Positions 1-62,872 of a stretch of DNA of 64,000 nt are shown piece after piece. Under the pieces are notes generated by a model, which saw only the letters and a program-made list of their open reading frames with translations, made no database searches and was not told the origin of the DNA. A program made the translations under genes and the position numbers. Location of the stretch: the NCBI GenBank assembly GCA_002269645.1, contig NIVC01000352.1, forward strand, positions 1 through 64,000. Reading direction: 5' to 3'. The DNA comes from Macrostomum lignano (Eukaryota). The stretch's first letter is position 1, and every line of letters begins with the position of its first letter.

Positions 1-210
1 TCCTACGAACTATACAGAGACCTGACCGCTGGAATATAATCGATTAGCTATGAAAGCCTTGAAAACGGAATCAAGCTTGGATCGTTAGAGCTGCACTGAC
101 CTCGTTAAAGTTTGTTTAACTGCATGACTTTTCATGCTGCCTCTCGTTATATGCAATCAGATGACTGATAATATTTCTGTAGCCTATGACTGTAGCCTTG
201 AATTTTTTAA

Positions 211-392
211 CCTGCCACTATCCCTCTCAGAACTTCAGTAACCTGCCGCTATCCCTCTCAGAACTCCAGTAACCTGCCGTTTTCCGCCTCTCGGAACTCC
301 AGTAACCTGCCGCTATCCCTCTCAGAACTTCAGTAACCTGCCGCTATCCTATCAGAACTCCAGTAACCTGCCGCTATCCCTCTCAGAACTCC
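211..392. repeat. 31-bp minisatellite (CCTGCCGCTATCCCTCTCAGAACTCCAGTAA), about 6 copies
   Basis: Direct tandem copies visible just upstream of the first recovered nAChR exon. Confidence 0.9.
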
Positions 393-427
393 ATCTCATT
401 TCTCCTCGCCCTCCTTCGGTGTCCCAG

Positions 428-1126
428 GCGCCCGCGCCGGTAGAAATGAGAAGCGTCTGCTGCAGCACCTGCTTGAAAACAAATCAAATCTGCACAACCC
501 GATGGAGCGGCCTGTTGAGAACGACACCGAGATTCTGTACGTCTGGTTCAAGGTGTCACTGCAGCAGATTATCGATGTGGTAAGTTGCCTATCGTTTTGT
601 GGCGCAAATCAGGTTTTACTCCATAATTTTTCCTTGTTTTCACTTTTCATTTTTATAGGATGAGAAAAATCAAATTCTATTCTCGAGTATTTGGTTGGAC
701 TTGGTAAGTGGGCTTCGTGTGTCCAAGTTTTAATTTTGCTCTTTTCTACCGTCAAATTCATTTTTTCAGTCGTGGACAGATTATCACTTCAAGTGGGACC
801 CGCGGACTTTGGCAACATCACTAAAATTAACATCGACCCAAAGAGAGTCTGGCGACCGGACGTGCTGCTGTACAACAGGTTGGAGACTGCTTAGGCTGTC
901 CATAGAGTGAATTCAATTCTTACTCGACCCCCAGTTCCCCCATCCGCTCACCAACTCAGTCTTTTTTATTAGAGGCATGAGGGCTAACCCTGGTGCACTT
1001 AAGGACATTTTCACACATTCTCACACTCGCACAACCGGCGATAGGCATTGCTGCCCATTCCACCGACTCCCCTGAGCAGGCACACAAGCGCGCGGATACG
1101 TACGCAGTCATACGCACCGGCACACA

Positions 1127-1176
<50 letters not shown>

Positions 1177-4100
1177 AGTTTACAGCGACCCTAACTTTAT
1201 TTATCGTTAGGCATGTACACTTCCCTGTGCCTTGGGGCTTGGCCCTCAATGGCGTTAATTGCACAAGCAGAGCTAAGCCGAGATTCCAATTCAGCCCCAA
1301 ACTAATGTGACTGCACTTGGAATCGAGCCTGGGCCACTGGCACATCAGAGCGCCGCGCCAGACCACTGGGCTACGCCCCACCAACTCAGTCATTCTCTCA
1401 TACAAGCCGTAAGATATCAATGAAGCCTCCCTATCTTTTGACGATTTTTTTTAATAGCGCGGACGAAAAATTTGACGCCACTTATCCGACCAACGTGGTG
1501 ATCGACAACACGGGCTTCATGACCTACATACCGCCCGGCATGTTCAAGTCCACCTGCAAGATCGACATCACTTGGTTCCCATTCGATATGCAGGAGTGTC
1601 TGATGAAGTTCGGCTCGTGGACTTACGACGGCGGGACAGTTGATCTGCGTTTCAAGTGCGCCAACGAGAGTCTCAAGTCTGTGCAGGACCGGCTGAACGA
1701 TCCGCGACGTTGCACCGAGAGAGGCAGCGGCGACACGTCCAACTATGTGAAGAGCGGGGAGTGGAACCTGGAAGGTGCGTCTCTTGCATGGAAGTTCTAG
1801 AAGCTCGTTTGAGTGGTCTAGATGGACTTTTAATGACGTCCGCTAGCGAAATTATTTCATTCAGATTGAATCTACGACTTGGGGTTATCGGTGATAGTGG
1901 GCAAAGCAACTCACGTCAGCGGTAATGTCCTGACACTCGCCAAACACCCTATATTCAGGGTCTAGTGTACAGAAATTTTTCCCCAAGCTTGTCCGTTGTC
2001 TTTCACGTCCGTGAGGGCCAGATCAAAAAACAGATGCCTGCTCGCTGGATAGATTATCGCATTGATTAAGAGACTCCCTTTTAAACTAACAAACGAAGGT
2101 TTTTAATTCCATCAGGTCTGTTAAAATGACAACTAACCGAATTTGATGCTGATGCGCCCGTCAACTCGCGACAATTTCACTCGCCATCAACTCCATGCAG
2201 GCCTGTGGGCGTTCGAACCGGCAAACTCTACGATTGCTGCCCGCATCCGTTTGTTGACCTGAAATTTTACATGCGCATACGCAGGCGCCAGCTTTACTTT
2301 TTGTTCAACATGCTGGGCCCGGTGGCATTTCTGTCCACTTTAGCAATACTCTGCTTTCTAATTCCGCCAGACGATGGCGAGAAAGTCTGCTTCGGTGTGT
2401 TGATAGAGCTGTCAATGAGTTGTGGGCGTCACAAATGACAACTGTACACAGGGCTTTGATGTCCTGACTTTGTGTCAGATGTTTTGCAAACAAGAGCGCG
2501 CAAACGGCCTAAATACGCTCGTATATTTTGCACTACTTTGCTGAAACGTGCGCAAAATTTATTTCTCACGATCTACAAACGTATAGTCCGCCTTATCTGC
2601 GCGTTATCCTTACACATCAAAAGCTCTATTAGCCCTTTTACAGAACATAAGCTATATCTCAAATTAAAATCTCTCCGACCCTAGATTGACCAACACCCTC
2701 CGACCCTAGATTGACCAACACCCCTCCGACCCTAGATTGACCAACACCCCTCCGACCCTAGATTGACTAACACCCCTCCGACCCTAGATTGACCAACATC
2801 CCTCCGACCCTAGATTGACCAACACCCCTCCGACCCTAGATTGACCAACACCCCTCCGACCCTAGATTGACCAACACCCCTCCGACCCTAGATTGACCAA
2901 CACCCCTCCGACCCTAGATTGACCAACACCCCTCCGACCCTAGATTGACCAACACCCCTCCGACCCTAGATTGACCAACACCCCTCCGACCCTAGATTGA
3001 CCAACACCCCTTCGACCATAGATTGACCAACACCCCTCCGACCCTTAGATTGACCAACACCTCCATCGACCTTAGACTGGCCAGCACCTCCTTCAAACCT
3101 CGACTGACCGACGCACTCACTCCATTCATTCTCCATTGAACAAAAAGCCAATGGACAAAGACAGGTAAAATGATTCTCGATCCCCACGGCCCTTTAGTAC
3201 CCCAAATATACTCGCCTTCCAACGCAGGCATGCCGGGTCAGAGAACCGCTTTACTGTACGACTGCTGCCCGTTTCCCTTCATCGACCTGAAGTACCGCAT
3301 CAAGATTCGTCGGCGGACCTTATACTACGGCTTCAACCTTATCATACCGTGCGTGCTTATCTCCACTATGACACTGCTCACCTTCCTCCTGCCGCCGGAC
3401 GCAGGGGAGAAAATCTCTCTCGGTACGTACGCTCGTACGCGACAATTGGCATGTCTTTGCTCTGCAATGCTTATCAAAGTTTTGTCAAATGTAGATCCAA
3501 TGTAGGAAAATCATGGATAACAGATTGTTGTCATTTTAGACACGTTTCCGACCGTGTAATTAGATCCTCACTATATATTTTAAAGCATCAGATTCATTGC
3601 ATTGTACAGGCGTGACAATACTATTGTCACTTATCATGTTTCTGCTACTAGTAGCAGACGCGATGCCGCAGACCTCGGAGTCTCTGCCGCTGATTGGTAA
3701 ACTTCTAGAGCAGTCCATGTTATCACTGTCAAATTAAATCTTGAACGATGTACAGGCTTAGTTATCTTCTGTTTTGTGTTATCGTTGTGCTTCATGTTGT
3801 CAATATCGACTGTCTGAATTTAAGCTTTCGAACGTTCTACTAATCCAATGTGCCATGCATGTTGCATGACTCACTGCTCTACTAACTCTATTTATAGGAG
3901 TCACTATCCTGCTGTCGCTCACCGTCTTCCTCATGACGGTTGGAGAGGCCATGCCCGCCACCTCGGACTCGGTGCCAGTCATCGGTAGGTGAACTCAGCA
4001 GGCGTCTTGCAACTCCTTCTTAAGCAAATTAGGAAACAATTGAGAGTTAAGAAGATTACTCTGTATCTATGCAGAGCTGAGACCAGAATCCAGGAGGGAC

Positions 4101-7100
4101 TGAGACCAGAATCCAGGAGGGACTGAGACCAGAATCCAGGAGGGACTGAGACCAGAATCCAGGAGGGACTGAGACCAGAATCCATGAGGGACTGAGACCA
4201 GAATCCAGCAGGGACTGAGACCAGAATCCATGAGGGACTGAGACCAGAATCCATGAGGGACTGAGACCAGAATCCATGACGGACTGAGACCAGAATCCAT
4301 GACGGACTGAGACCAGAATCCATGACGGACTGAGACCAGAATCCATGAGGGACTGAGACCAGAATCCATGAGGGACTGAGACCAGAATCCTTGAGGGACT
4401 GAGACCAGAATCCATGAGGGACTGAGACCAGAATCCAGCAGGGACTGAGACCAGAATCCATGAGGGACTGAGACCAGAATCCATGAGGGACTGAGACCAG
4501 AATCCATGAGGCACTGAGACCAGAATCCATGATGGACTGAGACCAGAATCCATGAGGGACTGAGACCAGAATCCATGAGAGACTGAGACCAGAATCCATG
4601 AGGGACTGAGACCAGAATCCTTGAGGGACTGAGACCAGAATCCATGAGGGACTGAGACCAGAATCCAGGAGGGACTGAGACCAGAATCCATGAGGGACTG
4701 AGACCAGAATCCATGAGGGACTGAGACCAGAATCCATGAGGCACTGAGACCAGAATCCATGATGGACTGAGACCAGAATCCATGACGGACTGAGACCAGA
4801 ATCCATGAGGGACTGAGACCAGAATCCATGAGGGACTGAGACCAGAATCCATGAGGGACTGAGACCAAAATCCATGAGGGACTGAGACCAGAATCCATGA
4901 GAGACTGAGACCAGAATCCATGAGGGACTGAGACCAGAATCCATGAGGGACTGAGACCAGAATCCAGGAGGGACTGAGACCAGAATCCATGAGGGACTGA
5001 GACCAGAATCCATGAGGGACTGAGACCAGAATCCATGATGACTTTGACCAGACCCACGAAGTCCGGGTTCAGATTCCAGTAACCTGTATTTTGTCCATCG
5101 GTTACTAATGCCACATTTTCTGTTTCTGATTCCAATGAAACTAGAACAAATTCTGATATTACTTAACTAATTTACATGCACTTGCAAAATTAGTATTAAC
5201 ATATGACTAACTTACCCCAACGCTACCCCAAGGCTGATAGACAGTTGATACAAACCGAGCCAATTAAAACTTTGCGCTGTGGCATTTCAGGCATGTACTT
5301 TGCCTGCACAATGATCATGTGCAGTCTGTCGGTGGTATTCACGGTGATTGTGCTCAACTATCATCACAGGAATGCGGAGTCTCATCCCATACCTAACTGG
5401 GTGAGTGAGATCACTATGCTTGCGTCATTTGCAGTGTAGTGAGCTGAAGTCAATGGCTCTGACAATGCTGCTGAGTGTATATTCGAACTAGATTTGTCAG
5501 TACAGTGGAACAGGTCACGTTTTCTTTGCCCGGATCAACCCTAGCTACTCAAACTCAAGCGGTTAACCTAAAATGCTATTTGATACATTTAACTAGATTT
5601 GAGGCGACAAATTATCAGATAAAAATTACAGCTGCAGGAGGGCCGTGGGGCACCCCGGCGCGACCGCCCTCGGTGACATCGTCTCACAACCAGCGCTGAC
5701 GGCAATTCTGCCCGTTCCGCTGGCTCCTGAGCACAATTTACGAGCTACACGGTTTAGCGCTGAGTTGCTGATCTGCTCTGCTTAGCGAAAGTCAGTGAGA
5801 GACTCACTTTAGCCAGCCGGGTTGGCCTGTCGGTGCATGTGTCCCGTCGCATTCATAGCCGGTCTCGAGCCCTAAATTGAGACAATAATCAGCCAATCCA
5901 CTCAATAATGCAGGTTCGCAAGTTCATCTGCGTCTACCTGGCCAGCATTCTGTGCATGCGGCACCACGGGCGGACGGAGCACTCCGAGCCAATCAGAGTG
6001 CGACGCCGGCTGAGCGACTGGCAGCGCAGGGCCAGCCAACTGCAGCGCCGCTCCGGCGGCCTGGAACTGCGGGAGCGCTGCTCGAAATCTTTGCTGGCGA
6101 ATGTGCTGGACATTGAAGACAATTTCCGAACATCCGTGCACCGGCAGCAGCGACCATCAATAAGGTAGCTCTTTTCGATGATGTACATACAACGTTATAG
6201 TAATAAATAACTAATGTACAAGCGTAGAAGGCCGCTCAGGTGCTTTCTAAATGGATTTAGCAAAGATGTTTTACAAAATCTGTCTATAAAAATCAAGGAC
6301 CACCAGGAACACTTCGTTATTATAAGGACGTAACACTCGATTCGTGTAAAAATAGTTGAAGGCCGATTTTCGTTCTCGTATGTAAATTAGTGAGATAGAC
6401 GAATTGCATGATTTTCAACATAATGTACTGAGTGCAGAAGCCTAGTAGTCCTTGATAAAAATTACAACGAAGAGACAGGACTGACGGTAGTTTTGCCAGA
6501 ATAATAATATCAGATTGATTTTTCTGAAATTAACCAGCTTTAACTGGATAAAACAGTGATTTTTTTACAAAATCGACTTTGAGCCTAAGTTCATTCCTCA
6601 CCAAATTATACGGACTGAGAGTTCAAGGCTGGAAGGCATCAGAGTTTGGCACCAGCACATAGCACAGAGTCAGAACTGGACGTCATTGCAGATCGTATCC
6701 GACTGGACTGACGGCGTCCTTTGATGAGACGCACGGCTGGGGCCAAGAGCGCCCGCTGCCGCACCAGCAGCTGCCGACTGACTCGCCGACCTCCTACAGT
6801 GCTTGCCAACCCGGCCGGCGCGCCCGCGACGCCTCAACCGACTGGGGATCGCAACTGGACCAGCCGGATCCGAAACAACCCGACGACTGCAACAGCCAGG
6901 CCGAGCTGGAGGCCATCATTCAGGAGCTTCGCTTTGTCACCAGGAAGATCGCGAACGACGTGGCCGACGGAGAAGTCAGCAGCGAGTGGAAATTCGCAGC
7001 TAGAGTGATTGACCGGCTCTGTCTGATCCTGTTCTCCGGCTTCACTCTGATTGCAACCTGTGCCATTCTGTTCTCTGCTCCGGACGTGTTCAAAGGCTGA
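428..7100 (+). CDS. Nicotinic acetylcholine receptor alpha subunit, alpha7-like (signal-peptide exon lies upstream, not found in window)
   Basis: Exons with GT-AG ends: 428-579, 659-703 (DEKNQ, 45 nt), 770-878 (WxPD..LYN), 1458-1774 (Cys-loop [15 protein letters not shown], loop B WTYDG), 2201-2394 or 3228-3422 (loop C YDCC + TM1), 3610-3696 or 3898-3984 (TM2), 5291-5400 (TM3, 110 nt), 5914-6164 ([13 protein letters not shown] motif of invertebrate alpha7-like subunits), 6692-7100 (TM4, [16 protein letters not shown]). Vicinal cysteines define an alpha subunit. A 1-nt deletion near 800 breaks the frame as given. Confidence 0.95.
1121..1173. repeat. (CA)n microsatellite
   Basis: Direct. Confidence 0.97.
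1304..1379 (-). mobile_element. tRNA-derived SINE head (copy 1)
   Basis: Minus strand reads GGGGCGTAGCCCAGTGG (A box) ... GGCTCGATTCC (B box); near-identical copy at 42240-42316. Confidence 0.65.
2201..2394 (+). CDS. nAChR alternative exon '7a' (loop C + TM1 + TM1-TM2 linker), 194 nt, one base short
   Basis: Acceptor CCATGCAG at 2193-2200, donor GTGTGT at 2395; encodes [63 protein letters not shown]; colinear with exon 3228-3422. Confidence 0.8.
2674..3075. repeat. 26-bp minisatellite (CCGACCCTAGATTGACCAACACCCCT), about 15 copies, in intron between exons 7a and 7b
   Basis: Direct tandem copies. Confidence 0.95.
3228..3422 (+). CDS. nAChR alternative exon '7b' (loop C + TM1), 195 nt
   Basis: Acceptor AACGCAG, donor GTACGT; encodes [64 protein letters not shown]; phase 1-1, the more canonical alpha7-like copy. 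Confidence 0.93.
3610..3696 (+). CDS. nAChR alternative exon '8a' (TM2 + TM2-TM3 loop), 87 nt
   Basis: Acceptor GTACAG, donor GTAAAC; encodes [28 protein letters not shown]; not in the ORF track (no ATG). Confidence 0.88.
3898..3984 (+). CDS. nAChR alternative exon '8b' (TM2 + TM2-TM3 loop), 87 nt
   Basis: Branch point-like ACTAAC at 3881-3886, acceptor TTATAG, donor GTAGGT; encodes [28 protein letters not shown]. Confidence 0.92.
4076..5038. repeat. 23-bp minisatellite (GGGACTGAGACCAGAATCCATGA), about 42 copies, in intron after exon 8b
   Basis: Direct tandem copies; source of the repetitive ORFs 3979-5135. Confidence 0.97.
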
Positions 7101-7865
7101 CGGAAGATATTTGGTCAGCAATTCAGTTAGCCATTGAAGAAATCGCTAGTTACTTTAGGTAGCAATATCAGCACATTTGCGTCTTTCAAATTTACTATAC
7201 ACACATATTAGACTCAGCTACCGTACGTCTAGTGTTCGGTCACATTTCACTGTAGTTACATAAAATTTTGTATTTGAAAGAGTTACAAGTGTATAGTAGT
7301 ACATGCTATTATCAAACTATTCGCATCTAATTCATATGTGATCTATGCATTGCTTGATACTCTTTTACAAAACTCCATTCCTTATTTTCAGCTGCACTGC
7401 TCTCCAATGATGATGTACCTTAGGTACTTGGGGTTGTAGCCTAGTGCTTTAGAGCATCGGACTCACTTGTGAACGGGAGTGAGTAAACAGAACGAAGCAA
7501 AAAGAGCAAATGAATTTCACTAAATAAACGGAACTAAACGTTCTCGTTCACCCTTCACTCACCTAGTAGCCAGCTAAACCTAAAAAACCTGAATATTTGG
7601 TTGTTTATTTTCACGCACGTCACACCAACAGAAAGTCGTGCTGGCTTTCCGCGAGACCGCGCGTGGGGGAAAGTTTGGCAAAAAATGACAAACTGAAAAA
7701 ATTTCAGTTGGAAGTGGACAAGTTTAGAGGAAAAAAATTGTCGGAGGCAGACAGTGAACACTAAAGCTATTTTCTATGAATGAAATAAACTCTTAAACCT
7801 GGCAGAAATATGAACAAAGTAAATTCTTAAAGACTGAGAAAAATGTCACTAGCACGGCACCGCGG

Positions 7866-9632
7866 TCAGTAGGCCGAGTTGGCCGGACTGCTATTGACGG
7901 CGTCAAACGCATCAAACAGCTGCTGCTGCTGCTGCAGACCCGCGCGGCCCGCCGGCTTTCCACCCTGAAGTCGGACGTCGCCCATGTCGCCGGGCGCGAA
8001 CTGCTGCTGCTGCCTGCCAGCGCTGCTGGAGTACATGTGCTTCACCAGCTCGCGCTCGAAGCTGTTCAAGTCTTCGGAGCGCTCCTCGTCTTCGTGGTCG
8101 GCGGTTTCCGTCTTTTCGTTGCCGGCGTAGGGAGATCGAGACGACAGCAGCTGCTGGCGGTGCTGCTGAAACTGCTGATGCTGCTGCAGTTGCTGCTGTT
8201 GAAGCATCTGCTGCATCAGCTGAGGCGGCATCTCCTGGCCCGGCATGCCGGACTCGTCAAAGTCGGTCATGATGTCGGAGCTGCCGGCAGGAGGCTGGGC
8301 GGCCGCCTGCTTCATCCGCGGCATGCCGCTGCTGCTGGCCTGGATGTAGCTGTTGAGCGAGGGCGGCTTGCTGAACCGGCTGCCGTTCTGCCGCACCCGC
8401 AGGAGGGCGCAGTCGTCGCCAACGCTGCGCAGCTCGGAGGCGGGCACGCGCCCAGCTCCTGTCAGATTGATGGTGCTGTCCTGCTCTTTCTCGTTGATGA
8501 TGCTGATGTGAGTCTTGATGGCCAGCAGAGAGTCAGTTGGTAGGGCGACATTCTCCGGCAGGCAGCTGAAGATCTTCTGCAGATGCTCCACAGGCAGTCG
8601 CAGAAACGTTTTTCGCCACTTGGTGGCTGTGAGGGCTCGGCGAATGATGTCGGCCAGGGAGTTCATCGGGCCGTTTTTCACCTTGCAGTGCATGCGGTAG
8701 TACAGGCCCATCAGCAGTGCGATGGCGCAGTCCTGGTCCATGATCATGGGGTCCAGGCTCTGGATGCGGGCAACAAACCCGGCCTTGGTGTCGGGCGTCG
8801 GCTGCAGCTCAAGGAAGCAGCGGTTTTTGAACAGCGTCTCCAGCGCGCTGATCAAGTTGTGCGACTTGCGACACTCTGGGTCCTCGTAGTACGCCACGCG
8901 GGCGATGCGGCGGAACAGGCTGATCTTCTGGCCGAACCCGTCATCGTCCAGCACCTGCGGCTGCCAAATCTCCGGCCGAATGGTGATGAGGCTCTCGAGC
9001 AGGCTGCTGATATTGATGTTGAGCCGCGTCTTCATAGTCTCGGTGCCGTAGTGGAGAGTGTCGCGATATTTGAACACCTTTTGGCTGGCCTTGCTCTCAT
9101 AGTGCAGCTCGAATGGCCGGCTGATGTCCAACGTCAGCGCCTGTCCGTCCTTCATGAACGGCGGCGCCACGCTGCTCAGGGAGCTGATGGCCTCGTAAAA
9201 CTCCCGCCTGATGGCGACGCACACGGGCAGGATCTCGACAATGTCGCCGCCGGCAACGCCTCGGCTGAATACGTCTGTGGCGAAGCTCTTCTGGTGCCCA
9301 TGGTTGACTCCACTGCGCAGGATGATCTCCACAGACTTCTCCTCCTTGAGGTAGATGGCCAGACTCAGCGGGTTGAGGTACAGCACGGCGTTGCGGTGAA
9401 ACATGGACTGAGAGTCGCGCGAGTCGTTCCCGATGAGGTCTGGCTGGTCGGCGATCTGGAAGATCTGCTGGAACAGCTCGGGCCTCTCCCTCACCATGGT
9501 GGTGAGACGGTGGTGCGACCTGCCACGGATCATGTTGATCATCCATTTCGTGTACGGGTGATGGCTGCGTAGGAACGGTGGTATGTTCAGGTGCGAATTG
9601 GGGAACTGCGGCGGCAGCGGGCAGCTGGTCAT
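7866..9632 (-). CDS. Intronless 588-aa protein of unknown function; possible degenerate ankyrin repeat and SOCS-box-like segment; Gln-rich C-terminus
   Basis: Long open frame with strongly GC3-biased codons in AT-rich flanks; NPLSLAIYLKEEKSVEIILRSGVN resembles an ankyrin repeat, SLADIIRRAL...LRLPVEHLQKIF loosely resembles a SOCS box. CDS is well supported, domain call is weak. Confidence 0.75.
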   Translation of the reverse strand: MTSCPLPPQFPNSHLNIPPFLRSHHPYTKWMINMIRGRSHHRLTTMVRERPELFQQIFQIADQPDLIGNDSRDSQSMFHRNAVLYLNPLSLAIYLKEEKSVEIILRSGVNHGHQKSFATDVFSRGVAGGDIVEILPVCVAIRREFYEAISSLSSVAPPFMKDGQALTLDISRPFELHYESKASQKVFKYRDTLHYGTETMKTRLNINISSLLESLITIRPEIWQPQVLDDDGFGQKISLFRRIARVAYYEDPECRKSHNLISALETLFKNRCFLELQPTPDTKAGFVARIQSLDPMIMDQDCAIALLMGLYYRMHCKVKNGPMNSLADIIRRALTATKWRKTFLRLPVEHLQKIFSCLPENVALPTDSLLAIKTHISIINEKEQDSTINLTGAGRVPASELRSVGDDCALLRVRQNGSRFSKPPSLNSYIQASSSGMPRMKQAAAQPPAGSSDIMTDFDESGMPGQEMPPQLMQQMLQQQQLQQHQQFQQHRQQLLSSRSPYAGNEKTETADHEDEERSEDLNSFERELVKHMYSSSAGRQQQQFAPGDMGDVRLQGGKPAGRAGLQQQQQLFDAFDAVNSSPANSAY

Positions 9633-55999: not shown

Positions 56000-57420
56000 A
56001 AAGAGAAAGAATAGACTATAAGAAAGAGCAGAGGGGCGAGAGGAGGATCAGAGAAAATATAGAAAATAATAAAAGAGACGAGGGGGTGAGGAGAAAGCAG
56101 AGAATATGGGAGGAAGAAGCAAAAGGAAGGATAGAGGAGGGAGAAGAAACAGTAGAGGTGAGAAGAAGGAGACAGAAGAGTTAAGAGATGAGACAGAGAA
56201 TCAATGAGAGAGCAGGGTAGAGAAGAGTGAGAAGAAAGTAGAGATGAGTAGACATAAGAGAACAGAGAGGAGATGAGAGAGGATTGAGAGGAGCGATTAG
56301 AAAGGATAGAGAAGAGATAAGAGGGGGAGAGAGGAGTGAGAAGAGAGGAGAAAAATGAGATAGAGTCGCAAAAGAAAAGGGGAGAAAGGAGAGATGATAG
56401 AGTAAAGGGAAGAGGAGGAGAGAGGAAAGAGATGAGATTTTAGAGATGAGAGAGATGAAAGAAAAACTGAAAGAGTAGAGATGAAAGATGAAGGAAGAGA
56501 GAGAGCAGAGTGCAAAGACGAGAGAAGAGAATAGAGGGAGAGAGTAGAGAAGAGGGAAGAGAAGTAAGGAAAGAGAGGAGTCAGAAGAGGGGAAAGAGAA
56601 GACTACACTGGAGAGAACATATAAGAGTAAAGATGACAGATGAGAGAAAAGAGATGAGAGAGCAGAAACGAGAGTGAACAGACGAGAGATAGGAGAGTAG
56701 AGAGAGAAGAGGAGAGATAAGAAATGAGGTGAGAGGTGGAGACAAGGGAGAGATGAGAAGTAAGTGAGGAGAGAGGAGGGGAGGGAAGAGAATCAAGAGG
56801 ACAGGGAAAATTGGTGGAAAGGGTGAGAGAGGAGAGGAAAGAGGGGAGAGATTAGAAAGAAGAGAGATGGGACAGGACAGGAGAGAGCAGAGAGAGAGAG
56901 AGAGAGAGAAAGAGAAAGAGAGAAGGAGAGGAGAGAAAGCAGAGAGAAATGAGAAAAAGATAAGAGAGAGAAGATAAAATAAGAGAAAGGAGAGATAAGA
57001 GAGCAAAGACAAGAGAGAAGAGAGGTGAGGGAAAAGATGAGAGGAGAGAGTGAAGAGAAGAGAGGAAAAAGGAGAGAGGAGAGATGAGGGAAGTGTTGAA
57101 AGAGGGTAGAGTAAGGAGTGAGAAGAGGGGAGAGGGAAGAGAGAGTAGAGAGCAGAGAGAAATGAGAAGAGATTAAAGAAGAGAAAGGAGATATGAGAGA
57201 TCAGAGACCAGAGAGAAGAGAGGAGAGGCCAGGAGAGATAAAGAGAGAAGAGAGGAGAGGCCAGGAGAGATAAAGAGAGAAGAGAGGAGAGGCCAGGAGA
57301 GAGAAAAGAATAGAGGGGAGAGGGGAGACAAGAGACGAGACAGAAGATAGGAAACAGAAGAGAAGATACTGTAGAAGTTTCAAAGTATCCAAGGGATTTA
57401 GGGAGAGGCAGAGATAGAAG
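56000..57420. repeat. 1.4-kb purine-rich (A/G) low-complexity tract
   Basis: Almost pyrimidine-free + strand; internal short tandem GAGAGAAGAGAGGAGAGGCCAGGAGAGATAAA. Confidence 0.9.
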
Positions 57421-59775: not shown

Positions 59776-62278
59776 ATGAAGCTCATAATTGATGTAGACA
59801 CAGGCATGGACGATGCTCAGGCATTGTTGCTGGCGCTCCGCAGTCCCCAAGCCCAGGTCCTGGCTGTCACCTGCATTGGCGGCAATGTTCCTCTGGACCT
59901 AGTAGTTCGCAACACCCGCCTAGTGGTGGCAGCTGCTAACTGGCCCGGACAGCCAGCGCCACGCGTGTTTGCTGGCTGCAGTCGGCCGCTGGTGTCAGAC
60001 GGCGATGGAGAGATCCGAGCGACGCATTATCACGGCAGCGATGGCATTGCCGGCGCCTGGGAGAAGCTCACCTCTAGCGACTCAACAAAGTCAGAAGTGG
60101 AGGCCGCGGTGAACTCTGTGCCAGTGGAATCCATGCACGCCGCCCTGGGCCTGATTGAGCTGGTGTCGCAGAACAAAGGCGAGGTCACCCTGCTGGCCCT
60201 GGCTCCATTGACCAACATTGCGCTGGCGCTGCGCCTCGAGCCGCGCCTTGGCACCTGGTTGAGAAGCCTAGTAGTCATGGGCGGCGCCTATCAGTCTATG
60301 GGCAATAATGAGCGCCATCTTAGCGCCGAGTTCAACTTTGTACACGATCCGGAGGCGGCGCGCCTTGTGCTGCACGAGATGCTGCCCTGTCCCAGGCTGA
60401 TCGTCCCTTACGAAGCCTGCTTGGAGAGCAGCCTGCCGTTTGATTGGGCGATTACCTGGGCCGCTGGTGGTAACGCTGCTGACGAGCCTAAGCCCTTGTG
60501 GCGTCGTCTCCATGAGCTGATTGTGTCTCACCAGTGCCTGATGCAGCGTGGTCAGGTCTGTGTTCAGGATTGTTCTTTGTTTTAACCTGTTTCAGCCTTG
60601 GTTTTGACATCTTGAGTTTGATTTTGGCATCAGGACTTTGATTTTGGCATCCTGAATTTGATTGTGGCATCCTGAATTTGATTCTGGCATCCTGACTTTG
60701 ATTGTGGCATCCTGACTTTGATTCTGGCATCCTGACTTTGATTCTGGCATCCTGAATTTGATTATGGCATCCTGACTTTGATTGTGGCATCCTGAATTTG
60801 ATTCTGGCATCTTGACTTTGATTCTGGCATCCTGAATTTGATTCTGGCATCCTGACTTTGATTGTGGCATCCTGAATTTGATTCTGGCATCTTGACTTTG
60901 ATTCTGGCATCCTGACTTTGATTCTGGCATCAGGACTTTGATTCTGGCATCCTGAATTTGATTCTGGCATCCTGACTTTGATTGTGGCATTCTGAATTTG
61001 ATTCTGGCATCCTGACTTTGATTCTGGCATCCTGACTTTGATTCTGGCATCGTGAATTTGATTGTGGCATTCTGAATTTGATTCTGGCATCCTGACTTTG
61101 ATTCTGGCATCCTGAATTAGATTCTGGCATCAGGACTTTGATTCTGGCATCCTGAATTTGATTCTGGCATCAGGACTTTGATTGTGGCATCCTGACTTTG
61201 ATTGTGGCATCAGGACTTTGATTCTGGCATCCTGACTTTGATTGTGGCATCCTGACTTTGATTCTGGCATCCTGACTTTGATTTTGGCATCCTGACTTTG
61301 ATTCTGGCATCTTGACTTTGATTCTGGCATCCTGAATTTGATTCTGGCATCCTGACTTTGATTCTGGCATCCTGACTTTGATTCTGGCATCCTGACTTTG
61401 ATTCTGGCATCCTGAATTTGATTCTGGCATCCTGACTTTGATTCTGGCATCCTGACTTTGATTGTGGCATCCTGACTTTGATTCTGGCATCCTGAATTTG
61501 ATTCTGGCATCCTGACTTTGATTTTGGCATCCTGAATTTGATTGTGGCATCCTGACTTTGATTCTGGCATCCTGAGTTTGATTCTGGCATGACTGAGTTT
61601 GGCATCATGACTGTGTTTATAGCATCCTGAAGGTGAGAGATTTCAACTAAGACTACTGAGAAAAGTAGACGAATAAAGACTTGAATCGTAAAATCTCTCA
61701 CCTAGCCCGAAAATGTCGCCATTAGAAACGGCAGCATATAAAAGAAACCATCTGTGCACACTGGGAGTGGTTGGCGTGTGGCCATGGCTGACTGACGAAG
61801 GCCAACAATCCAGAAACCGGTCTTGGTCTGCCTGCGCCGAGGTTCGATCTCCACTTTTAGTGTGTCACAGCAGACAGTGCTTCCTGTATTAAAGTTATTT
61901 AGGCTAATCAGCATGTGCACCGGTCTCACTTTCACACAGTATAGGATAGCTACGTACTATCTACTAAGAGTAGGCACCTATGAATTCAAATTATTATGAT
62001 TTCAGACGTTCGCGCTCACCCTGGCCCAGCCGTTGGCCTATCGCAGCTGCGACCTGCTGGCGGCCAGCATCTGCCTGCTGCCCAGCGTAGCCTCAGACGT
62101 ACTGGAGAAGCGTTGCACTATTGAACTGGCCGGCGGCGTCACCAGAGGTCAGCTGGTGGTTGATTGGTTCGACAAGGCGGACCGCGGGCTCAGCAAAGTG
62201 GCCACCGTGTCAGCCAGGTTTGTGACCAAAGTCGCACTGGATGCCTACCGGGCACTGCTGTTTGAAACTCTGGGATAA
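59776..62278 (+). CDS. Inosine-uridine preferring nucleoside hydrolase family protein, about 350 aa
   Basis: Ca-binding motif DVDTGMDDA, GNV, HGSDG, LAPLTNIALAL, VMGG, AEFNFVHDPEAA; exons 59776-60555 and 62006-62278 (phase 0); SCDLLAA and TRGQLVVDW in exon 2. Confidence 0.92.
60597..61590. repeat. 20-bp minisatellite (GATTCTGGCATCCTGACTTT), about 50 copies, in the hydrolase intron
   Basis: Direct. Confidence 0.97.
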
Positions 62279-62449: not shown

Positions 62450-62872
62450 GCCTGAATTCATGGTGTCACCATTGCCTGAATAGCCTGAATGTACAGTATC
62501 ACCTTTGCCTGAATAGCCTGAATGTACAGTGTCACCATTGCCTGAATAGCCTGAATGTACAGTGTCACCATTGCCTGAATAGCCTGAATGTACAGTGTCA
62601 CCATTGCCTGAATAGCCTGAATGTACAGTGTCACCATTGCCTGAATAGCCTGAATGTACAGTGTCACCATTGCCTGAATAGCATGAATGTACAGTGTCAC
62701 CATTGCCTGAATAGCCTGAATGCATGGTGTCATCATTGTTTGAATAGCCTGAATGTACAGTGTCACCATTGCCTGAATAGCCTGAATGTACAGTGTCACC
62801 ATTGCCTGAATAGCCTGAATGTACAGTGTCACCATTGCCTGAATAGCCTGAATGTACAGTGTCACCATTGCT
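62450..62872. repeat. 33-bp minisatellite (CCTGAATAGCCTGAATGTACAGTGTCACCATTG), about 13 copies
   Basis: Direct. Confidence 0.96.

Follow-up and report, generated by a model that had tools for sequence, protein, structure and literature searches.

How many different subunits could a single flatworm nicotinic acetylcholine receptor (nAChR) gene specify? The question is raised by a locus of Macrostomum lignano near the start of the 64,000-nucleotide (nt) stretch that we analyzed (contig NIVC01000352.1 of assembly GCA_002269645.1, positions 1 to 64,000 of the forward strand; hereafter the window, to which coordinates refer unless another contig is named). Our reading, which we consider likely, is that in a predicted alpha7-like nAChR gene two neighboring exon positions, designated 7 and 8, each hold a tandem pair of homologous, individually spliceable exons, and that one exon of each pair enters each mRNA. 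The resulting subunit variants would differ in the ligand site, the first transmembrane helix (M1) and the pore. A first-pass annotation, made from the sequence alone, had pointed to two adjacent exons that are each present twice (194 and 195 nt, 87 and 87 nt), and their lengths, coordinates and homology were reproduced in our analysis.

Positions 1-7200 were read and candidate exons were translated, which gave an alpha7-like nAChR gene extending from 428 to 7100 on the + strand. All exons of this gene except the first are in the window, the signal-peptide exon being located upstream of it, and AG before and GT after were found for every exon. The C-x13-C Cys-loop is present within exon 1458-1774, and the vicinal-Cys motif of loop C, YDCC, occurs in both 7a and 7b. 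Conceptual isoforms matched both Pfam domains of the family: Neur_chan_LBD and Neur_chan_memb were detected with E = 7e-62 and 1e-49 for the 7b+8a isoform, and with E = 1e-61 and 2e-43 for the 7a+8b isoform. The best solved relative of the product was human alpha7 (3e-129), compared with 1e-89 for the next subunit class in PDB. When databases were searched with the window protein, M. lignano proteins came on top, and the top named matches were alpha7 or acr-16-like. The gene is therefore predicted to code for an alpha7-like nAChR alpha subunit, a class assigned by best matches. Its exons are given below, where P0001 is an automated model of the window gene from another assembly and M2, M3 and M4 (the second of them also called TM2) are the further transmembrane helices.

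428 to 579, + strand: N-terminal extracellular exon (...QQIIDV), from translation, a 100% match to P0001; the acceptor position is only probable
659 to 703, + strand: 45-nt exon, single copy in the window (translation, motif scan)
770 to 878, + strand: extracellular exon of the 110-nt type, here 109 nt, with one base absent in the C-run at 799-801
1458 to 1774, + strand: Cys-loop exon (e6), 317 nt, ending in phase 1, with a loop-F insertion of ~22 amino acids (translation)
2201 to 2394, + strand: exon 7a, the divergent copy, 194 nt, encoding loop C with YDCC, pre-M1 with RRR, M1, the M1-M2 loop and M2 0'-3' (GEKVCFG)
3228 to 3422, + strand: exon 7b, the canonical copy, 195 nt, phase 1-1, ending in GEKISLG (translation, alignment)
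3610 to 3696, + strand: exon 8a, 87 nt, M2 4'-20' and M2-M3 linker, flatworm type (..MF..LVAD.MPQTSE..)
3898 to 3984, + strand: exon 8b, 87 nt, M2 4'-20' and M2-M3 linker, canonical alpha7/spiralian type (..TVF..V.E.MP.TSD..)
5291 to 5400, + strand: M3 exon (e9; translation)
5914 to 6164, + strand: cytoplasmic-loop exon (translation, comparison with P0001)
6692 to 7100, + strand: last exon, with cytoplasmic loop, MA helix, M4 and the stop codon at 7098-7100

The segment encoded by exon 7 covers loop C, pre-M1, M1, the M1-M2 loop with the -1' Glu and M2 1'-3', and that encoded by exon 8 covers the rest of M2 (4'-20') and the M2-M3 gating linker. Judging from alpha7 in general, changes in such segments would alter gating, desensitization, and conductance or Ca2+ permeability. 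Alignment of 7a and 7b revealed 34 identical amino acids out of 64 (53%) and 62% nt identity; for 8a and 8b, 18 of 28 amino acids (64%) and 62% of nt were identical. The exon-7 copies differ at M2 1'-3' (VCF vs ISL) and all through M1, and the exon-8 copies differ at 12', 13', 16', 17', 19' and 20' (Glu/Asp). As the first-pass annotation had claimed, each of the four exons has its own AG and GT sites, and the remaining exons are single copy, on which tblastn and a motif scan of the window agree.

For tandem-duplicated mutually exclusive exon clusters, we used the criteria of PMC3228551, which are neighboring homologous exons, own splice sites at each copy, the same length and phase, and a single copy in each mature mRNA. 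Pointers to the last are indirect: 7a stands in for 7b among isoforms of the nemertean Lineus, and BOX15 models of M. lignano, taken to be transcript-derived, have one exon per pair (both described below). Both pairs consist of neighboring homologous exons with splice sites at each copy. Length and phase are the same for 8a and 8b (87/87 nt, both phase 1-1); 7b is 195 nt long with phase 1-1, whereas 7a, with 194 nt, is out of frame in the window and has 195 nt, in phase, at a paralogous locus described below. Thus, phase 1-1 boundaries, which had been assigned to all four exons, were confirmed for 7b, 8a and 8b but not for 7a, whose frame opens at 2202, and the statement that both exon lengths are multiples of three is at odds with the 194 nt given for 7a in the same annotation. 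Its proposal of up to four subunits from one gene was borne out in that the arrangement could give as many as four, with differences in the pore, in M1 and in loop C.

With a frame that opens at 2202, 7a requires two bases from the preceding exon, yet exon 1458-1774 ends in phase 1, so that 7a is one base short near 2206 and out of frame with this exon. The window copy retains a 64-codon open frame, AG/GT sites, YDCC, RRR and GEK. An in-frame upstream acceptor that would rescue 7a was considered and rejected, as direct reading revealed no in-frame AG between the stop codon at 2127-2129 and position 2200. A second deficit is present in exon 770-878, which has 109 nt where 110 are required; the frame shifts at the C-run 799-801, where the window reads GACCCGCGGAC and P0001 reads WDPADFG. 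P0001 is without both frameshifts and is otherwise 100% identical to the window translation. It reads GLLGVRTGK at the start of 7a and implies one additional T near 2206 and one additional C at 799-801; the expected intact sequences are GACCCCGCGGAC (region 795-810) and GCCTGTTGGGC (region 2200-2210). In addition, a contig from a third assembly (L003, allelic or homeologous), which is 98.8% identical to the window over 7.4 kb and ends inside the 7a-7b minisatellite, has 3-4 bases deleted in exon 7b where the window is intact. These comparisons point to single-base deletions as a recurrent assembly artefact at this locus. Because P0001 is without both frameshifts and L003 shows similar deletions in 7b, the two one-base deficits of the window are probably assembly indel errors.

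The same architecture was found at a paralogous M. lignano locus, carried by two near-identical contigs (L001 and L004), in which the exons follow in the order 7a-7b-8a-8b with lengths of 195/195/87/87 nt, all phase 1-1 and with AG/GT at every exon. On L003, 7b-8a-8b are contiguous, and a third paralog (L002) contains only one 7b-type and one 8a-type exon. Between the window and L001, the ratio of nonsynonymous to synonymous substitution rates (dN/dS) was 0.16 for 7a, 0.06 for 7b, 0.11 for 8a and 0.06 for 8b, with dS saturated (0.9-2.2) and dN low; the constitutive exon 1458-1774 gave 0.18. Since dS is saturated while dN stays low, all four exons are under purifying selection and have been kept as coding sequence since the paralog split.

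The occurrence of the exon-7 pair in other phyla was assessed by a protein search with 7a alone over 1.8 billion representative proteins. The top of the list was occupied by proteins that match 7a twice, i.e., models co-including two exon-7 copies, which come from another M. lignano paralog, a barnacle, an isopod and further contigs. RefSeq isoforms of the nemertean Lineus longissimus (XP_064652926, XP_064652936, XP_064652944, XP_064652952 and XP_064652968, isoforms X1-X6) all have 480 amino acids; X3 and X6 carry the 7a-type exon (…RRRKLYFLANLILPCMILSSLCLVTFLIPPDAGEKVSFG) and X1, X2 and X4 the 7b-type exon. The order 7a-then-7b, as in L001, is kept in the Lineus genome (L007; 76695-76889, then 77679-77873), in Capitella (L008; 6428-6619, then 6770-6964) and in a nemertean-like contig (L006), where a 75-nt intron separates the copies. 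An Owenia model (P0016) holds 7a and then 7b. Two exon-7 copies were also detected in isopod models and in the barnacle Amphibalanus amphitrite, where they are followed by three alternative TM2 exons.

In a neighbor-joining tree of the M1 half of exon 7 (39 residues), the spiralian 7a-type exons formed one clade with a bootstrap of 0.72. The loop-C half grouped by species, which co-evolution with the other parts of the ligand-binding domain would predict, and the 7a clade was not recovered in the tree of the whole exon 7 (bootstrap 0.07). There is moderate support for 7a/7b as an alternative-exon pair that existed before flatworms, nemerteans and annelids diverged. Exon-7 copies of crustaceans group apart from spiralian 7a and look like a separate duplication; an adjacent double-cluster architecture, as judged from the gene models, is present in the barnacle too. 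The first-pass annotation knew of no paired duplication of the loop C/TM1 exon. However, the Lineus isoforms swap exactly this exon, and copies of it are found in Capitella, Owenia, L006 and crustaceans. Full-text literature searches returned nothing on nicotinic receptors with alternative loop C/M1 exons, nor on the splicing of Macrostomum receptors; the exon-7 alternative is already visible in the Lineus RefSeq isoforms and is undescribed in the papers found by these searches.

As for the exon-8 pair, 8b of L001 agrees at 27 of 30 residues with the TM2 exon that Lineus and Capitella have in single copy, and the signature of 8a (…MF..LVAD..PQTSE…) recurs in the TM2 exon, again a single one, of every trematode ortholog. 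In a tree based on 30 residues, M. lignano 8a grouped with the trematode exon (bootstrap 0.45), 8b was nearest to canonical spiralian exons and barnacle 8y, and 8a and 8b of M. lignano were never together. By these similarities, 8b is assigned to the canonical, ancestral-type TM2 exon and 8a to a flatworm type. Although weakly resolved, 8a/8b looks like a flatworm-lineage pair, and one that is older than the split between Macrostomum and trematodes; if so, trematodes and L002 would have lost 8b and 7a. The labels of the first-pass annotation, divergent for 7a and 8a and canonical for 7b and 8b, fit 7a, 7b and 8b, but 8a is a flatworm type shared with trematodes, and presenting it as the divergent counterpart that goes with 7a is misleading.

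Which copies are joined in one product? Three BOX15 models of the Mlig_3_7 annotation (P0009, P0022 and P0002), which we take to be transcript-derived, contain 7b+8a. L002, Schistosoma japonicum (L005) and all trematode orthologs have 7b- and 8a-type exons only. The inner pair, 7b+8a, looks like the default combination. Two models of another M. lignano paralog (P0008 and P0290) contain 7a+8b; a search with P0290 identified no NCBI locus for this paralog. A protein search with the 153-amino-acid 7a+8b segment, a short query, returned 29 candidates, P0001 not among them. In Lineus, 7a and 7b are both joined to one same canonical TM2 exon. The coupling suggested in the first-pass annotation, of 7a with 8a and of 7b with 8b, is unsupported, as the combinations seen are 7b+8a and 7a+8b. 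There are automated models with three or four of the exons together; P0001, P0004 and P0005 contain all four. Such models cannot be right because the subunit family has four helices, and they are almost certainly mis-annotations. We observed co-inclusion in Capitella P0015, Owenia P0016, all barnacle RefSeq models (exon 7) and M. lignano P0001, P0004, P0005 and P0007.

How could exclusivity be achieved? With 833 nt between 7a and 7b and 201 nt between 8a and 8b, the introns exceed the length at which steric exclusion could act. Nonsense-mediated decay (NMD) cannot enforce exclusivity either, because co-inclusion or double skipping preserves the frame; the first-pass annotation had made this point, and it holds with exons of 195 and 87 nt. 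Competing long-range intron pairings or tissue-specific splicing factors would be the likely means. Candidate pairing elements and repeats in the introns of the window gene are as follows.

2122 to 2133, + strand: TAAAATGACAAC, 68-79 nt before the 7a acceptor, a perfect complement of 3527-3538
2428 to 2442, + strand: GTCACAAATGACAAC, 34-48 nt after the 7a donor, 87% complementary to 3527-3541
3527 to 3541, + strand: GTTGTCATTTTAGAC, candidate pairing site 69-83 nt before the 8a acceptor, complementary to both elements flanking 7a
2673 to 3088, no strand: minisatellite of 16 copies of a 26-nt unit, between 7a and 7b; NIVC01000372.1, a contig of Mlig_3_7, stops inside it
4077 to 5052, no strand: 23-nt minisatellite, 42.5 copies, in the 8b-M3 intron

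The exact 10-mer AAATGACAAC is found on both sides of 7a (2124-2133 and 2433-2442), and its reverse complement is at 3527-3536, 83 nt before 8a; these three copies, two direct and one complement, are the only exact ones in the 64 kb. The corresponding duplexes have about -17 kcal/mol, and the motif is absent from the paralogs. L001 and L004 contain a different candidate, a 31-nt pairing with 81% complementarity, a 13-nt perfect core and -40 kcal/mol, whose arms (4311-4341 and 6317-6347 of L001) are located 27 nt after the 7a donor and 69 nt before the 8b acceptor and which would loop out 7b+8a. Pairings were scored by local complementarity, as RNAduplex on 150-nt windows gave diffuse whole-window duplexes and was dropped. 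The score of the L001 pairing was reached by 1 of 300 shuffles when only splice-site-proximal windows were considered, which corresponds to ~0.05 after 15 tests. In a region-wide inverted-repeat test, the window was not significant and L001 was dominated by another repeat. We regard the pairings in both loci as leads only.

Several observations weigh against the reading that the window gene uses both pairs as alternatives. Its 7a is the most divergent of the 7a exons, with a long branch, Val in place of the Cys of the M1 'PC' motif, and PPDDGEK for PPDAGEK; its frameshift, as assembled, would also fit a decaying exon in the window copy. No BOX15 model of the window gene itself was among the matches, and the models with 7a or 8b derive from an automated annotation that also gives impossible co-inclusions (P0001, P0004 and P0007). 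No intron sequence, and nothing beyond the exons, is conserved between the window and L001, and the one strong candidate RNA bridge is in L001/L004 rather than in the window and is borderline after multiple-test correction. Part of this evidence would be explained if only 7b+8a were used in the window gene and 7a, perhaps with 8b, were a decaying leftover of ancestral alternatives, as might also be suggested by the frame of 7a relative to the preceding exon, by the restriction of the BOX15 paralog models to 7b+8a, and by the complete loss of 7a and 8b in L002 and trematodes. We find this unlikely: 7a keeps a 64-codon frame, both splice sites and the YDCC, RRR and GEK motifs, its dN/dS (0.16) is near that of the constitutive exon (0.18), 8b has a value of 0.06, and P0001, from another assembly, has 7a in frame.

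Use of both pairs could also be restricted to two outcomes, e6-7b-8a-e9 or e6-7a-8b-e9, with 7b+8a removed together in one intron in the latter. This nested, coupled choice is possible though rather improbable. It is consistent with 7b+8a and 7a+8b being the only combinations in models without co-inclusion, with L002 having kept exactly the inner pair, and with the L001/L004 pairing, which joins the 7a-donor side to the 8b-acceptor side (the 1 in 300 shuffles noted above). However, that pairing is not in the window, where the elements flanking 7a pair upstream of 8a instead, and it is not significant region-wide; in addition, P0008 and P0290 come from an automated annotation, and Lineus, by joining 7a and 7b to the same canonical TM2 exon, indicates that a protein of 7b plus an 8b-type exon is viable. 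The more specific version, in which the two pairs form one nested switch and an intron-intron RNA bridge beside the 7a donor and an exon-8 acceptor loops out the inner exons (7a+8b vs 7b+8a), is quite doubtful. If true, it would be a coupled double mutually exclusive choice in which ligand-site/M1 and pore exons are exchanged together, and it would combine a TM2 pair of the flatworm lineage with an exon-7 pair probably older than the spiralian phyla. Inclusion of all four exons, as in P0001, would preserve the reading frame and is what P0001, P0004 and P0005 predict, just as the barnacle RefSeq models predict both exon-7 copies. Nevertheless, pentameric channel subunits have a four-helix topology, with which a second loop C/M1 and a second M2 are incompatible, the BOX15 models have one exon per pair, and the Lineus isoforms replace rather than add exon 7, making such a product very improbable. 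Finally, M. lignano assemblies are repeat-rich and indel-prone, and the 7a-7b minisatellite is where a contig from another assembly breaks off, which could raise the suspicion that two loci or haplotypes were collapsed or interleaved into apparent duplicates. The first-pass annotation had itself named an assembly merge of two loci as fatal to its reading. What was found is an identical four-exon order on the paralogous L001 and L004, contiguous 7b-8a-8b on L003, 7a-7b tandems in the genomes of three other species, and copies that are only 62% identical at the nt level, far from allelic, all of which make an artefact of this kind extremely improbable.

Two separately duplicated, individually spliceable exons, the reading we prefer, can be compared with known systems. 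Insect alpha6 provides textbook cases, as its alternative TM2 exons and 45-nt exons tune a subunit that is a major target of insecticides. In that gene, exons 3a/3b and 8a/8b/8c are mutually exclusive (PMC6393475), and the window gene resembles it in being an alpha7-like gene with an 87-nt M2 exon in tandem alternative copies and several clusters per gene. In contrast to alpha6, the second cluster of M. lignano is the 195-nt loop C/M1 exon directly upstream of the TM2 exon, the 45-nt exon is single copy in the window gene, and the TM2 pair looks flatworm-lineage, with the 8a signature common only to trematodes. In a copepod ortholog, alternatives exist for the 45-nt exon, for a segment of loop F and for the TM2 exon, and the equivalent of the 45-nt exon is duplicated in Lineus and Capitella and alternative in Tigriopus. 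Lineus longissimus has the same 7a/7b-type pair in the same genomic order, with annotated substitution and the 7a signature RRRK...EKVSFG, but it has a single TM2 exon and alternative copies of the 45-nt and 110-nt exons, and its isoforms are Gnomon models. The tandem alternative copies of its 45-nt exon and of its 110-nt exon (the latter ~54 nt apart) were observed at 62458-62650 and 69550-69819 of L007, and two copies of the 45-nt exon at 4311-4658 of the Capitella locus L008. The alpha7/acr-16-like gene of Amphibalanus amphitrite (XP_043210121-25, KAF0300447) also has two tandem exon-7 copies directly before several alternative TM2 exons; however, both copies are RRRT-type and group with isopod copies, and all models co-include both.

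The Drosophila RDL GABA receptor has alternative exons 3 (a/b) and 6 (c/d), whose four variants affect agonist potency. Its gene, too, codes for a Cys-loop receptor and carries two separate pairs of mutually exclusive exons (splice variants of RDL are mentioned in PMC4019635), but both RDL pairs belong to the extracellular domain, are non-adjacent and encode no membrane helices. Long-range competing RNA pairings have been described in mutually exclusive splicing (PMC4691838, PMC3535345). The candidates beside the 7a donor and the exon-8 acceptors (the 31-nt duplex of L001 and AAATGACAAC/GTTGTCATTT in the window) are similar to these systems, but conservation between paralogs and covariation are both absent, and the statistics are borderline.

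Judged by exon homology and order, loop C/M1 would be a further alternative-exon position in the alpha7-like family, combined in M. lignano with an adjacent TM2 pair. A known alternative-exon strategy would thus operate at a new position, and one gene could produce as many as four combinations of agonist site, M1 and pore lining. The locus also offers a compact system in which to ask whether the choice at one exon position depends on that at its neighbor, and by what means the copies stay exclusive without NMD. In addition, it exposes an annotation problem, as automated models in M. lignano, Capitella, Owenia and the barnacle co-include copies and so predict impossible proteins.

Additional features of the gene and its paralogs were observed. 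The loop-F insertion in exon 1458-1774, ~22 residues relative to human alpha7, contains two extra cysteines, which could form an additional disulfide; it is common to the M. lignano paralogs, and a shorter form is present in Schistosoma. The equivalent of this exon is followed by a GC donor (TGGAAG/gcaag) in L001 (2843/2844) and L002 (12968/12969), where the window has GT. L003 is identical to the window in 8a, 8b, M3 and the next exon and has 8 substitutions in the last exon (6692-7100); this unevenness points to mosaic haplotypes or gene conversion. Introns of the window gene contain minisatellites (31-, 26- and 23-nt units) and a CA run at 208-393, 1121-1174, 2673-3088 and 4077-5052; minisatellites of L001, at ~3540-4020 (e6-7a intron) and 6700-7420 (8b-M3 intron), have units unrelated to those of the window.

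Outside this gene, Rfam and tRNA scans of the window found nothing. A single-exon open reading frame (ORF) of 588 amino acids with a Gln-rich C-terminus and no Pfam match is located at 7866-9632 on the - strand. An M. lignano protein annotated on NIVC01000372.1 has the identical sequence, and the genes annotated next on that contig are those for an acetyltransferase, a P450 fragment and PRORP. At 56000-57400, a degenerate simple repeat, purine-rich and (GA)n-like, results in extreme GC and AT skew in the composition profile. Finally, an ORF at 59776-60585 on the + strand strongly matches inosine-uridine-preferring nucleoside hydrolase (PF01156, E = 2e-56).

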